From the NCBI GenBank assembly GCA_025594325.1, contig JANHCV010000001.1:3906001-3970000 (forward strand): 64,000 nucleotides of DNA, in the 5' to 3' direction. The notes under the pieces are model-generated. The model was given only the letters and a program-made list of their open reading frames with translations, was not told the DNA's origin and did not search any database. How positions within the stretch are numbered: the first letter of the stretch is position 1; every line of letters begins with the position of its first letter. Origin of the DNA: Blastocladiella emersonii ATCC 22665. Lineage: Eukaryota > Fungi > Blastocladiomycota. The position numbers and the translations under genes are program-made. Of the stretch, positions 36,320-42,629 are shown one piece after another.

Positions 36320-36720
36320 TCGAATTTCATCCGGTGTTCGGTGATGTGGAACAGCTTGTGTCCGGCGCGACGGAAAGAAGAAACTGGGCACGCTCGCGGC
36401 ATTTGGTCTGGTGGTCCGCATTGAAAGGCCGCAGAGAGTACAGAGCACCAAGTTCGACTGTGTGAGACGTCTCATTCGTCTTGCAGCGAGCGTGTCGCCC
36501 GACAGGTGCGAGACAAAAGCGCGAGACACCTTACGGGACGCGACGCGAAAATAGGTGACCCGCCCCACGTGATTTGGCTTCGATAAAGCGTCGCGTTTTT
36601 CGAGCGAGCGGCACCACCCGCGAACCGACCTCTGCTATGGAAGGCGCCCAAAACTCTCCTCTGACCTCGCGGCTCGCCCTCTCTCCCCTCGCTCGCAGCA
36701 AAGATCACACCCACATTGCA

Positions 36721-38464
36721 ATGTCTGCCATCGTCGCCGCGTCACACAAGCACCCCGCGCCCGAGGGTGTCGTGTTCACCTACGGCACCGCCGGCTTCCG
36801 CATGAAGTACGCGCAACGCAGGCTCGTGTGACCCGAGGCCGCGAAGCAGGCGCTGACGGGCACCCCGCTCGCTCCCCGTGTAGGGCCGAGCTGCTCGACT
36901 CGGTCATCTACCGCGTTGGCCTGCTCGCCTCGCTGCGCTCGCGCTACCTCGGCGGCAAGACGATCGGCGTCATGATCACGGCGTCGCACAACCCCGTCCA
37001 GGATAACGGCGTCAAGCTCGTCGACCCCATGGGCGAGATGCTTGAGCAGTCGTGGGAGGCCCACGCCACCGAGCTCGCGAACGCCCCCACCCACGAGCGC
37101 GTCGCCGAGCTGTACGCCGAGATCGCCAAGGCCCACAACGTTGACGTCGCCTCGGTCGCCAACGTCATCTTTGCCCGCGACACTCGGTACGCGCGCCCTT
37201 CGATCGGATGGTTACGCGGGGACCGTCGCTCACTCCCGCCCGCTCTCCGTGTAGCCCGTCGGGCCCCGCTCTCGTCCAGGCCCTCGCCGACGGTCTGACC
37301 GCCGCTGGCGCCACCTTTGTCGACCACGGGCTCAAGACGACCCCGCAGCTGCACTACCTCACCCGCTGCATCAACGACGCGACGTACGGCGAGCCGACCG
37401 AGGAGGGCTACTACACCAAGATCTCCAAGGCGTACAAGGACCTCGTGGCCGGTCTCCCGGCCCTCGACGTGACCGTCGACTGCGCCAACGGCATCGGCGC
37501 GCCCAAGCTCGTCGACATTGCCCAGCACCTCGGCGACTCGGTCAAGCTGACGGCCGTGAACGGCGACACGGTCAACGGCATCCTCAACTACCGCTGCGGC
37601 GCTGACTTTGTCAAGGTCAACGTCAAGCGCCCCGAGGGCTTTGTCGTCAAGCCCAACGCGATCCACGCGTCGTTCGATGGCGACGCCGACCGCATCGTCT
37701 TCTACTACGTCGACGACAAGGACGAGTTCCACCTCCTCGACGGCGACCGCATCACGGCGCTCGTTGGTGCCTTCATCATCGAGCAGGTCCGCGCCGCGGG
37801 CCTGTCGCTCGACGTGGGCGTGGTGCAGACGGCGTACGCCAACGGCAACTCGACGCACTACCTGCGCGACTCGCTGCAGGTCCCCGTGGCCTTCACGCAG
37901 ACGGGCGTCAAGCACCTGCACCACAAGGCCGAGGAGTACGACATTGGCGTGTACTTTGAGGCCAACGGGCACGGCACCGTCATCTTCTCCAAGAAGGCGC
38001 ACGCGACGATCGCGGCGGCCGACGCGTCCAAGCCCGCGCTGCGCGTGCTCAAGTCGCTCATTGACGTGATCAACGAGACGGTCGGCGACGCCATTTCGGA
38101 CCTGCTCGTCGTGCTCGGCGTGCTGTCGCACCGCGGCTGGACCCTCGCCAACTGGGACGCCCTGTACGACGACCTGCCGTCGCGCCTCGTCAAGGTGGTG
38201 GTGGCCGACCGCGCCGCCTTCAAGGCCATCAACGCCGACACGGAGCTCGCTGAGCCCAAGCACCTGCAGGCGCTCATCTCGGCCGAGGTCGCCAAGGTGC
38301 CCCGCGGCCGCAGCTTCGTCCGCCCCTCGGGTACCGAGGACGTGGTCCGCGTCTACGCCGAGGCCGAGACCCGCGAGGCGTGCGACCAGCTCGCATACAC
38401 GGTCGCTGGCCTCGTGTTCGACAAGGCCGGCGGTGTGGGTGCTCGCCCTGCCGAGTTCCTGTAA
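36721..38464 (+). CDS. AGM1: Phosphoacetylglucosamine mutase, 3 exons
   Basis: YGTAGFR, GVMITASHNP phosphoserine loop, DGDADRI, GVVQTAYANG, FEANGHGT, RSFVRPSGTEDVVRVYAE. Confidence 0.95.
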
Positions 38465-38687
38465 GCATCTAGCTAGGTATACAACTTCTCGCAACATGAG
38501 AGAGCAGATTTGATTTGACTCTCTTTGACGCAAACCCTGTGAGACGAGAGACGGAAAGCGCGTGTCCTGCAGGCGCCGAGAAAGAGACGCCGAGAAAAAG
38601 ACACGTCGCGTTCGGCCGAGTGGGAGACGCGTCGCGCCACGCGCGCGACTCCGCAGGATCGCCTGCGTACAAATCGTCCACCGGATT

Positions 38688-41600
38688 ATGGCGCCTCCTG
38701 GTAGCTCCGAACTACCGGATCTAACACATGCAGCATCGAACACCACCATGTTATGCAACTACGATCATCATGGACCTCGATCTTGGCCGAGGCCACGATG
38801 GCCACTCGCGACTGCATTGCTGCTGGTCGTGGCCACCGTCCTCCTCCTCGCGGTTCCACCCGCCGTAGCCGCGGCAGTTAACATCAGCCTCATTTTCACG
38901 TCGTCGTTCAATGGCGAGGCCACGGGCCTCGCGGTCAGCGGCAGCACGTACGGCGGGTATGCCCGTCTCAAGACCGCGTACGACCGGCTCGCGGCGGGCG
39001 CGCCACCATCCTCGACCGTAATGCGCATGCACCTGCACAACGCGATCGGGACCACGCTCTTCGACCAGTTCTTCCAGGGGCAGATGGAGAAGACGCTCAT
39101 GGGCATGGTCGGCATCGAGCTGACGGGGATGGCCACGCGAGACATGTTCACGCCCCTCGACACGCTGGCGACGAACCTGTACCAGGGCGCCAACTACTCG
39201 CTGGTCTGCTCGGATTGCATGGTACGCGACACTCTCCGCCTGAAGCGGTGCTGAGCACTCACGGTTGTGGCCACCACTCGTAGGTTCCGAATTCGCACCC
39301 GTTGTACTCGGTCATGAACCGTGTCGTGGTTCGCGAGTTCAACGGCGTCCGCGTCGCCTTCCTGTCGTTCCATACGGACGACCAGTGCCTTAAGGGTACG
39401 CGCGCCCGTTCGCGCCGCAGAACTTCATCGCTGACGCCTGACTCGCCTCGTAGTCACGACTTGCACTGTCACCAACAACGGCACGACCAAGGAGGTCATG
39501 TACTTCCAGCCCAACCGGATACAGGACACGATCAAGCTCGCACGTCTCGTTTACCGCGCCGACTACGTGATCACCATGGGCCTCGGCAACGTGGACTCGA
39601 TTGACCTCGACCGCGTGTCCGCCGACCTGTACACGGGGCTCGACTTCGTCCTGTCGATCGACTTCTCGGCGCCGACGCCGGTGCCCGTGTACTCTGCCGG
39701 CGGGATCCCGCTGTTCTCGGCCGCGGGCACGGGCGGGACCGAGGTGGCGCGCGTCGACCTCGAGCTCAACCCGGGCTCGCCGCTGCGCGTCGTCGGCAGC
39801 GCCAAGATCACGACGCTCAAGTGCGCGAGCGAATCGGCGCCGACGCCCAACTGCACCGTGGCCGACCCGGTGGTCCAGGCGGCCGTCGACCAGGCGCTCG
39901 TCCAGGTGAACCAGTTCACGACGACCGTGGTCGGTGCCACGACCAACCTGCTCAACAACACGCTGTGCGGGACGCGCGAGTGCGCGCTCGGCAACCTCGT
40001 CGCCGACTCGCTGCTGTGGGACGGGGCCGCGCGGTGTGACCACATGATCCTCAACCAGGGCTCGCTGCGCACGACCATCAACGCGGGCAACATCACGATT
40101 GGGACGATCCGCACGCTGCTGCCGTTCCAGAACCGGCTCGCCTACTTCAAGATCAAGGGCCGCAACCTGCTCGACGCGCTGACCAACGGCGTCAGCCGCA
40201 CCGAGCTCCCCAGCGGGCGGTTCCCGCAGGTCGCCGGCATGCGCATCAACTTCCACCCGACGCGCAAGTGGTTTATGATCGACAGCGCCGGGTACGGCCT
40301 GCGGCTGCAGTCGGTGCAGATGCGCGACCCGGCGACGGGCACGTACTCGGACATCGTCATGGACAAGGTCTATCGGATGTGCGGCAGCGACTACCTGACG
40401 AGCGGCGGCGACGGCTACGTGCAGTTCAAGACGCTCGCGACCAACATTGACAGCTTCGGCCCGCAGATGGACGAGGTGCTCGCGCGGTACCTGCGCGCGG
40501 TCGGCACCGTGTCGCCCGTGGCCGAGAACCGCCTGTTCGCGTCCGAGTCGAACGCGGCCACGCTGATCGGCAACTGTAACTACCCGCCGGTGCTCCTGAC
40601 GGGCGCCTCGGGCACTTTCACCGACTACTGCGGCGCCGGCCGCCGCGCGTACACGAACGTCACCTTCGTCATCCAGCCCAACGTCACGACGCCCGTGCGC
40701 AGCATCGAGGTGACGCTGTCGGGGCTCGACTTCACGGCGCGCGGGCAGGACTACGTGACGCTGCACGCGGGCCCGACGGTCCTGAGCCCGCCCGTCACGC
40801 TGATCATGAACGGGACCCGCGTCACAGCCAACTACACGGTGGCTACGGGCCTGCCCGCGAAACCGCTCAACGTGTTCGCGTCGGCCATCGTCGTGCACTA
40901 CGAGTCGCGCATCGAGACGGCCGGCGCGGGGCTGACCGTCAGCTACACGGCGCGCAACACGTGCCCGAACGGGTACGTCCCCGTCGACGAGACGGGCTGC
41001 TTTGCGTGCGGGACGGGCTACTTCAAGAACGCGACCGTCGCCGGGTGCACCGCGTGTCCCGCGGGCTCGTACTCGGCGTTCGTCGGCAGCCCCGAGTGCA
41101 GCGAGTGCGCGGCGCCGTCGTACTGCCCGTCGGCGGGCATGTCGGACACGCTGATGTGCGCGACGAACCGCGGGTACGTGCGCAAGTCGGCCAGCCTGTG
41201 CGTGTGCCCCGACGACACGCGCGAGACGGCCAACGGATGTATTCTCGCGCCCACGTCGAGCTCGAGCACGTTCGCCATCGTCAGCGTGTCGGTGATTGGC
41301 CTGGTGCTCGTCATTGGCGGGGTCTGGTACCGCAAGCGTGTGCAGAAGCTCCGTGACAAGGCGCTCGGGCGGCACCTGCAGGCGCGCAAGATCAAGGTAG
41401 TCTCTAAGCGCGCGCAGCTGCTCGTCGACGCAACCAAGAGCGGGTTTTTCATTGCGCTTGACGCGGTCGAGATTGGGTTCGATTGGTGGACGTACTTGTC
41501 GTTCAACGAGGGCGACACCTTCAAGGTCGTTTACATGGTCGTCGCGGTCGTCGGAACGACGGTCGCGCTCATTTCGATGGCCCTCCGCGCGCTGTTCGCG

Positions 41601-42524
41601 TACCGCATGTACAAGATCTCGACCGAGGGCATCGAGGTGCTGCAGCGCAAGAAGGCCAAGGGCAAGCGCGGCAGCAAGCTCCCTCTGCCGACGCCGCTCA
41701 CGGCCAAGGTCGACCCGAGCAGCGGCGGCGGGCTCGACAAGGAAAAGGGCGGGGCGGCGAGCGAAATGGACCTGCAGGCGACGCTCGGCGACGACCCGGA
41801 CTTTGTCGACCAGTTCCGTAAGCTGCACCTGTCGCGCGAGCACCTGCAGCACACGCAGTACGTGGCGCTGCCCGGCTTGCTCAAGTCGCTGCCCGTCATG
41901 GTCGTCGAGCTGCTGGTAATCGGGTCGGGCGACTCCAAGAAGCCCGCGCTCCTCCTCACCGGCGCGTTCGGCGTCAGCTGTCTCTCGTTCGCGCTCAACT
42001 TGCAGGTGTGCGGCGAGTGGCTCACGACGCTGCACGAGTACCGCCGGCAGAAGCTCTTCATCGACAAGCGGCTGCGCGACTTCGGCATGGCGCGCGCGTC
42101 GCGCATCGAGGCCAACAACTCGCGCGCCACCATGAAGAGCATACGGCGCGGGTCGGGCCCTGGCGACGGCGGGATCCCGGCGTTGCTGGGCGCACCGGCC
42201 ACCGACTCGGTGCTCGTCCCCGCAGCGCTGCGGGTCGGCGGGATCACGGCAACGGCGCCGATCCACGGGAACGAGCACCACGGCGGTGGCGAGCACGCGG
42301 GGATCGGTGGCGGCACGACGCTCGACCGGCTGCAGCCGGTGCCCGAGGAGTCGCGGCCATCGAGCGGCGTCGACCTGCTCGCACCGATGGGCGACGCGGT
42401 GAGCACGGCGCTCCCCGTGTCGATGCCGGCGAGCCGGTCGCCGTCGTCCGACCTGCTGTCGTCGTCGATCAACGCCGCGGGCGGAGGCGGCGGCGTCAAG
42501 AAGCGAACCATCAACTTTGGATAA
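38688..42524 (+). CDS. Receptor-like membrane protein: signal peptide, degenerate 5'-nucleotidase (N and C domains), CUB, Cys-rich (GCC/ephrin-receptor-like) repeats, about 5 TM helices, cytoplasmic tail; 3 exons
   Basis: GGYARLKT, ECALGNLVADSL, NQGSLR, LLPFQN, GRFPQVAG, YLTSGGDGY (5'-NT). ASGTFTD...DYVTLH...GAGLTVSY (CUB). CPNGY, CGTGYF, CPAGSYS repeats. FAIVSVSVIGLVLVIGGVWY and further TM segments. Introns at about 39222-39283 and 39396-39453. Start 38688 or 38748. Confidence 0.8.
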
Positions 42525-42629
42525 TGTCTGCATTTCGGGGAGTCGGAGATCATAGAAATTCATTAGCTTGCGTGAGGCGAGGAAAGCAAGTGCCGCAAAA
42601 GCCGAGGCTCGGAGAAGTCAGGTCAGCGA

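Follow-up and report, generated by a model that had tools for sequence, protein, structure and literature searches.

The window analysed here, the whole 64,000-nucleotide stretch of Blastocladiella emersonii ATCC 22665 DNA presented above, carries on its forward strand a gene for a membrane protein whose predicted extracellular head is a catalytically dead relative of the 5'-nucleotidases (5'-NT) CD73 and UshA, and which we propose to be a receptor. From its N terminus the protein consists of a signal peptide, a two-domain CD73/UshA-like head, a CUB-fold domain, an ephrin-receptor-like Cys-rich stalk, a first transmembrane helix (TM1), four further helices and a disordered tail. Its 1238-codon frame is unbroken and both introns are canonical. 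Exon 3 is 100% identical to the NCBI protein H9P43_001496 (P0001 below), in which both intron junctions are also identical to those of our gene model. The mature spliced protein was analysed as residues 523-1700 of P0001 and the leader as window positions 38688-39221. The gene and its parts are as follows.

38688..42524, + strand: whole gene, three exons and two short introns, about 1238 codons plus stop (frame analysis, splice sites)
38688-39221, + strand: exon 1
39222..39283, + strand: intron 1, GTACGC..TAG, phase 0; homology runs on across the junction
39284-39395, + strand: exon 2
39396..39453, + strand: intron 2, GTACGC..TAG, phase 1; junction shared with P0001
39454-42524, + strand: exon 3
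38688..38867, + strand: leader with hydrophobic signal peptide (from the translation); alternative ATG at 38748
38868..39860, + strand: degenerate metallophosphatase-like N-domain of the 5'-NT fold, P0001 523-813, split by both introns
39861..40541, + strand: 5'-nucleotidase C-terminal (substrate-binding) domain, P0001 814-1040; PF02872, E 3.6e-27
40572..40949, + strand: CUB-fold beta-sandwich domain, P0001 1051-1176; AlphaFold2 (AF2) predicted local distance difference test score (pLDDT) 80-94 over the domain
40950..41264, + strand: Cys-rich stalk of ephrin-receptor-like / TNFR-like repeats, P0001 1177-1281; PF07699
41268..41330, + strand: TM1, P0001 1283-1303; hydropathy 2.49, a helix in the AF2 model
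41331..42137, + strand: fungus-specific membrane module (hydropathy, conservation, AF2 block)
42138..42524, + strand: low-complexity, poorly conserved cytoplasmic tail and stop codon

The positive-inside pattern places the N terminus outside, and the ectodomain carries 11 N-glycosylation sequons. The preliminary description of this locus had ended the element at 41270, which is the boundary between ectodomain and TM1.

P0001 is annotated as a 1700-amino-acid fusion of phosphoacetylglucosamine mutase (AGM1) and the pseudo-nucleotidase (window 36650-42524, + strand), with ..VFDKAG joined to AAAVNISL... However, the AGM1 frame has its own stop codon at 38464, and the predicted fusion intron would excise both that stop and the signal peptide of the pseudo-nucleotidase. 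In Blastocladiella britannica the orthologue, situated at a contig end, is a stand-alone protein of 1242 amino acids that begins at the signal peptide, 8 residues ahead of the aligned hydrophobic core. Because this separate orthologue starts just before the aligned hydrophobic leader, we treat the B. emersonii gene as separate, with its own start. A cytosolic enzyme placed ahead of a glycosylated, disulfide-rich ectodomain would moreover be topologically senseless. The annotated fusion is most likely a gene-merging error, and the chance that such a protein exists is very slight.

An antisense open reading frame (ORF) of 1057 amino acids (39390-42563, - strand) overlaps the gene. It looks like a by-product of GC-rich coding sequence: the GC content of the window is about 65% and the Pfam domains are on the + frame. 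No second copy of the gene (paralogue) was found in the window.

The head and its former active site

The C-terminal half of the head is readily recognised. Pfam 5_nucleotid_C (PF02872) scores 95.9 bits against a cutoff of 23.6, and phmmer aligns this domain to the Thermus thermophilus 5'-NT (E 5e-21) and to human CD73 (E 3e-17). The N-terminal 300 residues have no Pfam match, not even at E 10 (Metallophos included). Scored alone against a leave-one-out hidden Markov model (HMM) of nine 5'-NT N-domains, the N-domain nevertheless reaches 23.1 bits, against 4.5 for the best of 500 shuffles. In a Foldseek comparison (E 6e-40), about 520 residues across both domains of the head's AF2 model (pLDDT 74.7) align with human CD73, with a template-modelling (TM) score of 0.70-0.74 to closed forms and about 0.5 to open forms; since the model rests on ten aligned enzyme sequences, its pose is not independent evidence. 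The N-terminal region is a true homologue of the 5'-NT metallophosphatase domain, and the two-domain 5'-nucleotidase layout originally proposed for this protein is borne out by the Pfam C-domain, the N-domain HMM and the fold match to CD73.

Residue equivalences were established by three alignments (MAFFT, the leave-one-out HMM and hmmalign of 148 relatives), all of which agree. As a reference we used the 102 intact relatives, defined as those keeping at least 7 of the 8 catalytic residues, in which all 14 catalytic and pocket positions are near-invariant. None of the eight metal or catalytic positions is kept in B. emersonii: CD73 D36, H38, D85, N117, H118, D121, H220 and H243 correspond to S, N, N, T, R, F, L and D. 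They fall in five former motifs.

38895..38912, + strand: former motif I, FTSSFN (versus HTNDxH); CD73 D36 to S, H38 to N
39030..39041, + strand: former motif II, HLHN (versus DxGD); D85 to N
39132..39149, + strand: former motif III, ATRDMF (versus GNHxFD); N117 to T, H118 to R, D121 to F
39573..39590, + strand: former motif IV, TMGLGN (versus ALGHxG); H220 to L
39654..39668, + strand: former motif V, SIDFS (versus GHSH); H243 to D, which is D in 8/8 fungal members

These are the replacements that had first been read by eye, and none of the three alignments restored the ligands. Among the 13 dead heads that form one clade (see below), only 5 of 102 catalytic cells are kept by hand count. Since neither the metal ligands nor the His-Asp dyad survive in B. 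emersonii or in any other member of the family, the head is predicted to be non-catalytic, as the preliminary description had it. The two His of former motif II (HLHN) occur only in B. emersonii, the orthologues having GGN, QAN or VNN at this place; the pair is probably not a residual metal site.

Most of the substrate pocket, in contrast, is kept. In CD73, D506 and N390 bind the ribose, F417 and F500 stack the adenine and the di-Zn site binds the phosphate (PMC12586806). By sequence alignment, five of the six pocket positions are kept in B. emersonii, where CD73 R354, N390, R395, F417, F500 and D506 correspond to G, N, R, F, Y and D; the kept residues are N878, R883, F902, Y991 and D997 in P0001 numbering. 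The hypergeometric chance of finding all five kept positions among the six pocket positions is 6/2002, or about 0.003 (calculated by hand). The motifs concerned are these.

39966..39983, + strand: CGTREC (CD73 CRFREC); both Cys of the C353-C358 pair kept, R354 to G (phmmer alignment)
40053..40070, + strand: NQGSLR (CD73 NGGGIR); N390 and R395 kept
40119..40127, + strand: LPF (CD73 LPF); F417 kept
40392..40418, + strand: YLTSGGDGY, i.e. Y..GGDGY (CD73 F..GGDGF); aromatic at F500, D506 kept

The phmmer alignment to CD73 and the site table thus agree with what had been claimed for NQGSLR, LPF and Y..GGDGY, and for the loss of R354. Over the 13-member clade 60 of 78 pocket cells are kept (hand count). 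N390 and D506 are each 92% conserved, a value at the 97th percentile among C-domain columns, and an aromatic stands at F500 without exception; in all eight fungal members N390, D506 and a Tyr at F500 are invariant. Retention is lower at R395 (69%), R354 (54%) and F417 (54%). Heads linked to 7tm_3 or to a kinase-cyclase keep 5/6 or 6/6 pocket residues. This pattern supports a conserved, predicted binding site for a ribose-bearing ligand, and since the phosphate-contacting arginines drift, in the Blastocladiella lineage the likelier ligand would be a nucleoside and not a nucleotide. New conserved residues have appeared at the former metal site, namely N at D85 (62%), T at N117, F at D121 (77%) and, in every fungal member, the D at H243. 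For this reason the former metal cleft looks remodelled rather than freely decaying.

Stalk and membrane module

The stalk and membrane part was modelled separately with AF2 (P0001 1040-1572, pLDDT 79.8). The domain that follows the head superposes on the CUB domains of Kremen (VIA Z 13.5), TSG-6 (CUB_C, 12.7) and PCPE-1 (12.2) over 109-114 residues at 2.1-2.6 A, and also aligns to the CUB domains of cubilin and neuropilin (VIA Z 12-13.5 across the set). Foldseek matches to CUB domains have TM scores of 0.64-0.69 by target, and a profile of 11 family members compared with the PDB finds the CUB protein PCPE-1 first (E 0.0085). The 126 residues after the head have no Pfam match, CUB (PF00431) included, at E 10. 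On the strength of the model, the domain is a CUB by fold and not by sequence membership, so that the original CUB assignment stands for the fold but finds no Pfam match behind it.

The Cys-rich repeats that had been noticed next to it belong to Ephrin_rec_like (PF07699), which scores 25.9 bits on the isolated stalk (E 8.3e-6) against a cutoff of 23.1; in a scan of the whole exon the score is 18.1 bits, below cutoff. Foldseek relates the stalk to Elapor1 and to the ligand-binding and Cys-rich domains of Eph receptors (Eph LBD-CRD), and an Atlas shape search returned ephrin-receptor-like clusters only.

Beyond TM1 lies a module in which a basic juxtamembrane segment is combined with two helical hairpins (four helices), a variable loop and a small beta-pair on the cytosolic side. 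Hydropathy gives five hydrophobic helices in total, TM1 included, and the positive-inside rule fits. The module is conserved in five fungal proteins from Blastocladiomycota and Spizellomyces, with 21 invariant columns, among them acidic positions, a Trp of helix 2 and the LPG..K..P..V pattern of helix 4. AF2 models its best helices at pLDDT 83-91, with lower values on TM1 and the juxtamembrane segment, and in the model the juxtamembrane strand pairs with the strand leaving helix 3.

No sequence relatives of the module were found in Pfam or the PDB, and an Atlas feature search with it returned noise (0.81). The possibility that it is a decayed 7tm_3 domain was rejected: hhalign against the 7tm_3 modules of relatives gives a probability of 0.3%, and there is no PF00003 match. 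Among membrane proteins the best fold matches are the XK-related scramblases XKR4, XKR9 and XKR8 (VIA Z 10.2, 9.3 and 8.0 over 143-153 residues), all below the helical noise bar of about 13. The module matches no known family, and the fungal dead-head form that carries it is unannotated.

Two chytrid proteins, P0024 (Fimicolochytrium, 875 amino acids) and P0025 (Phlyctochytrium, 819 amino acids), stop soon after TM1 and have no four-helix module; either the gene models are truncated or these are genuine single-pass proteins.

Relatives and their outputs

The relatives surfaced only in an exhaustive HMMER search; word-index searches with exon 3, the N-domain or the membrane module returned only the protein itself or distant enzymes. 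They comprise proteins of B. britannica (45% identity), Sorochytrium milnesiophthora, Spizellomyces punctatus (SPPG_01727), Fimicolochytrium, Phlyctochytrium and Rhizophlyctis, three proteins of Pigoraptor chileana, one of Salpingoeca helianthica and several contigs. The architecture search across zoosporic fungi suggested in the preliminary description has therefore yielded orthologues in chytrids, Spizellomyces among them, as well as in B. britannica and Sorochytrium. The B. emersonii protein aligns collinearly with 11 relatives and possesses every part of the family (N-domain, 5_nucleotid_C, CUB-like domain, Cys-rich stalk and transmembrane helix), and all the full-length relatives named lack the metal ligands.

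In some relatives the head is joined to other outputs. It is followed by 7tm_3 in P0026 (E 2e-44), in the S. helianthica protein P0072 (4e-33) and in P0118 (9e-43), and by PK_Tyr_Ser-Thr in the Pigoraptor proteins P0169 (E 1.5e-50) and P0161 (E 2e-53). A Cys-rich stalk is present in the receptor-type relatives wherever the stalk region could be scored. A quick IQ-TREE analysis unites 13 dead eukaryotic heads in one clade (SH-aLRT 98), P0072 and P0026 among them together with the fungal proteins. Blastocladiomycota and chytrids separate within its fungal half (support 91), as vertical descent would lead one to expect, and this half is sister to the holozoan 7TM- and kinase-linked heads. Because the 13 dead heads form one clade, the simplest reading of these sequences is that catalysis was lost once, anciently, and that the dead head was then retained while its output was swapped; for P0075 (below) and P0118 a single loss is not proven.

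Several further proteins deserve mention. P0075, a receptor-like protein of 1398 amino acids from a Logan contig, has a 5'-NT-type head with 2/8 catalytic and 6/6 pocket positions, followed by a hydrophobic segment at about 561, a tyrosine-kinase-like domain, a guanylate cyclase and a second kinase. P0062 and its cluster (Anaerolinea sp., 1205 amino acids) combine a Ser/Thr kinase, a hydrophobic segment at about 367, an FGE-sulfatase domain and a 5'-NT-like domain; this head is partly dead (3/8 catalytic) with 6/6 pocket residues kept, and the group may represent a convergent bacterial use of the fold as a sensor. Two contigs, L002 (SRR27165748, 3668 nucleotides, encoding P0021 of the fungal type) and L003 (SRR19044637, 3547 nucleotides, encoding P0026 of the 7tm_3 type), each consist of a single unbroken ORF between short flanks. 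They resemble assembled transcripts; if so, the family is expressed in those organisms.

A putative receptor and its known counterparts

We propose that the B. emersonii protein is a type I, five-helix membrane protein in which a catalytically dead CD73/UshA-family ectodomain has been reused as a ligand-binding receptor head, and we assign this reading a probability of roughly 60%. The receptor role itself appears well supported, because relatives fuse the same dead head to 7tm_3, to tyrosine kinases and to a kinase-guanylate cyclase; these fusions, and the single clade that joins the 13 heads with the fungal proteins, uphold the original suggestion of a receptor rather than an enzyme. The more specific suggestion of a purine sensor is plausible but survives in part: five of the six pocket residues are present in B. 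emersonii, whereas across the clade only N390, D506 and an aromatic at F500 are near-invariant.

The 5'-nucleotidase family is known for hinge closure of the N-domain on the C-domain. In the mechanism that we envisage, an old opisthokont head family would have lost its di-metal centre once and would then have been carried, together with the CUB-like domain and the Cys-rich stalk, onto differing outputs: class C 7TM domains and tyrosine kinases in unicellular holozoans, and the four-helix module in Blastocladiomycota and chytrids. The retained C-domain pocket would bind a small ligand that contains ribose, most likely a nucleoside or a compound resembling a nucleotide, and binding would favour hinge closure. 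The change could pass through the rigid CUB/Cys-rich stalk and TM1 to the membrane bundle, for which the modelled pairing of the juxtamembrane strand with the exit of helix 3 would offer a physical route. Such coupling would parallel the path from Venus flytrap through Cys-rich domain to 7TM in class C G-protein-coupled receptors (GPCRs). The identity of the ligand, closure as the signal and the downstream role of the module are steps that we infer.

Several observations weigh against this proposal. B. britannica, the nearest orthologue, has P for R395, Spizellomycetales have N for F417, and none of the four Blastocladiomycota keeps R354. N390, D506 and the GGDGY loop may be retained in part for folding. 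The closed-like pose of the AF2 head is no evidence of closure, given the enzymes on which the model was built. No signalling activity is known for the membrane module, and its fold matches are generic four-helix bundles. Finally, the quick tree puts P0075 and P0118 on long branches that lie apart from the 13-member clade.

The variation within the pocket bears on the nature of the ligand. The cleft could have been retuned, either to some different small molecule or to a protein that acts as partner, in which case the protein would still be a receptor but not one for nucleosides or nucleotides. R354, R395 and F417 vary within the dead clade and the former metal site has gained its conserved N, T, F and D, as such retuning might leave behind; CUB domains, moreover, often bind protein ligands. 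Yet within the clade no C-domain positions are better conserved than the ribose pair and one stacking aromatic, and the heads linked to 7tm_3 or kinase-cyclase outputs keep five or all six pocket residues. We consider a different ligand possible but doubtful.

The membrane module raises the question of whether the protein signals at all. It might be a surface protein for adhesion, for matrix or wall organisation or for nucleoside capture, its helices serving as an anchor or as a transport or lipid-handling unit. Adhesion and matrix proteins often contain CUB domains and Cys-rich repeats, the module contains no recognisable signalling enzyme, its best membrane-protein fold matches are the scramblases described above, and the two short chytrid models stop soon after TM1. 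However, the same head clade is fused to bona fide outputs in sister lineages, the 21 invariant columns, with D, D, W, K and P inside the membrane, exceed what an anchor needs, and the XKR similarity lies under the noise bar and has no sequence support. A non-signalling role is therefore unlikely. A surviving enzyme with a different catalytic apparatus is highly improbable: although an acidic residue persists just past the former H118 (ATRD) and two non-conserved His flank former motif II, no catalytic position remains in any of the three alignments, those His are absent from orthologues, and Metallophos finds no match in B. emersonii at E 10 or in the eight family members scanned at E 0.01.

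The receptor reading can be extended one step further, to a dead head that acts as an adenosine or nucleoside sensor by hinge closure and a four-helix bundle that is a new signal-transducing, possibly ion-conducting domain. This combination is speculative and, taken as a whole, rather unlikely. If true, zoosporic fungi would have a purinergic receptor class of their own, whose head makes it a relative of the class C GPCRs and receptor kinases of protists. Little is understood of purinergic signalling in organisms other than animals, we know of no fungal nucleoside receptor, and the literature searched held nothing relevant on nucleotidase or adenosine responses in Blastocladiella. The family would offer a clean case of an enzyme turned receptor, an ecto-nucleotidase having become a non-catalytic head early in opisthokont evolution and having then been coupled to at least four different outputs (7TM, tyrosine kinase, kinase-cyclase and the fungal helical module). 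It also provides a concrete ligand hypothesis for orphan protist GPCRs and kinases and flags a conserved fungal membrane domain. Spizellomyces punctatus can be transformed, and its orthologue SPPG_01727 makes a genetic test feasible.

Among known systems, CD73 and UshA share with the B. emersonii protein the two-domain fold, both Cys of the C353-C358 pair and the pocket residues N390, R395, F417, F500 (as Tyr) and D506. They differ in that B. emersonii lacks all six metal ligands, the His-Asp dyad and R354, and in what follows the head: CUB, Cys-rich stalk and five membrane helices here, whereas CD73/UshA proteins are GPI-anchored (glycosylphosphatidylinositol) or free in the periplasm. Eph receptors resemble the stalk, where a sandwich followed by Ephrin_rec_like repeats matches Eph LBD-CRD (Foldseek E about 3e-5), but the B. 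emersonii sandwich is far closer to true CUB domains (Z 12-13.5), and the protein has neither fibronectin repeat nor kinase. XK-related scramblases provide the best membrane-protein fold matches to the four-helix bundle, but sequence similarity is absent and the module has half the XKR helix count.

With the metazoan class C GPCRs (mGluR, CaSR, T1R) the analogy lies in a bilobed hinge-closing domain on a Cys-rich stalk and a membrane bundle, and the stalk gives a weak NCD3G-like signal (E 0.24 in B. emersonii, 2e-4 in P0026). Their Venus flytrap, however, has the periplasmic-binding-protein fold and the B. emersonii head that of a 5'-NT, the membrane modules differ as well, and we do not claim homology.

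Counterparts are also on record among the class C GPCRs of unicellular holozoans. A 5_nucleotid_C domain has been noted on a Capsaspora Glutamate-family GPCR (EFW44378; Krishnan 2012, PMC3251606), and ectodomains with 5_nucleotid_C and Ephrin_rec_like on choanoflagellate class C GPCRs (eLife 2025, PMC12716839). The passages of these two papers that concern the domain do not discuss the catalytic residues, the dead N-domain, the retention of the pocket, the kinase-linked forms or the fungal family and its membrane module. The statement in the preliminary description that no fungal receptor of this architecture had been described is partly wrong: class C GPCRs with a 5_nucleotid_C head have been published for Capsaspora and choanoflagellates, whereas the fungal form, with a membrane module of its own, carries no annotation. 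The dead head, the CUB-like domain and the Cys-rich stalk are common to the holozoan receptors and the B. emersonii protein, which differs from them in carrying, in place of 7tm_3, a different arrangement of five helices.

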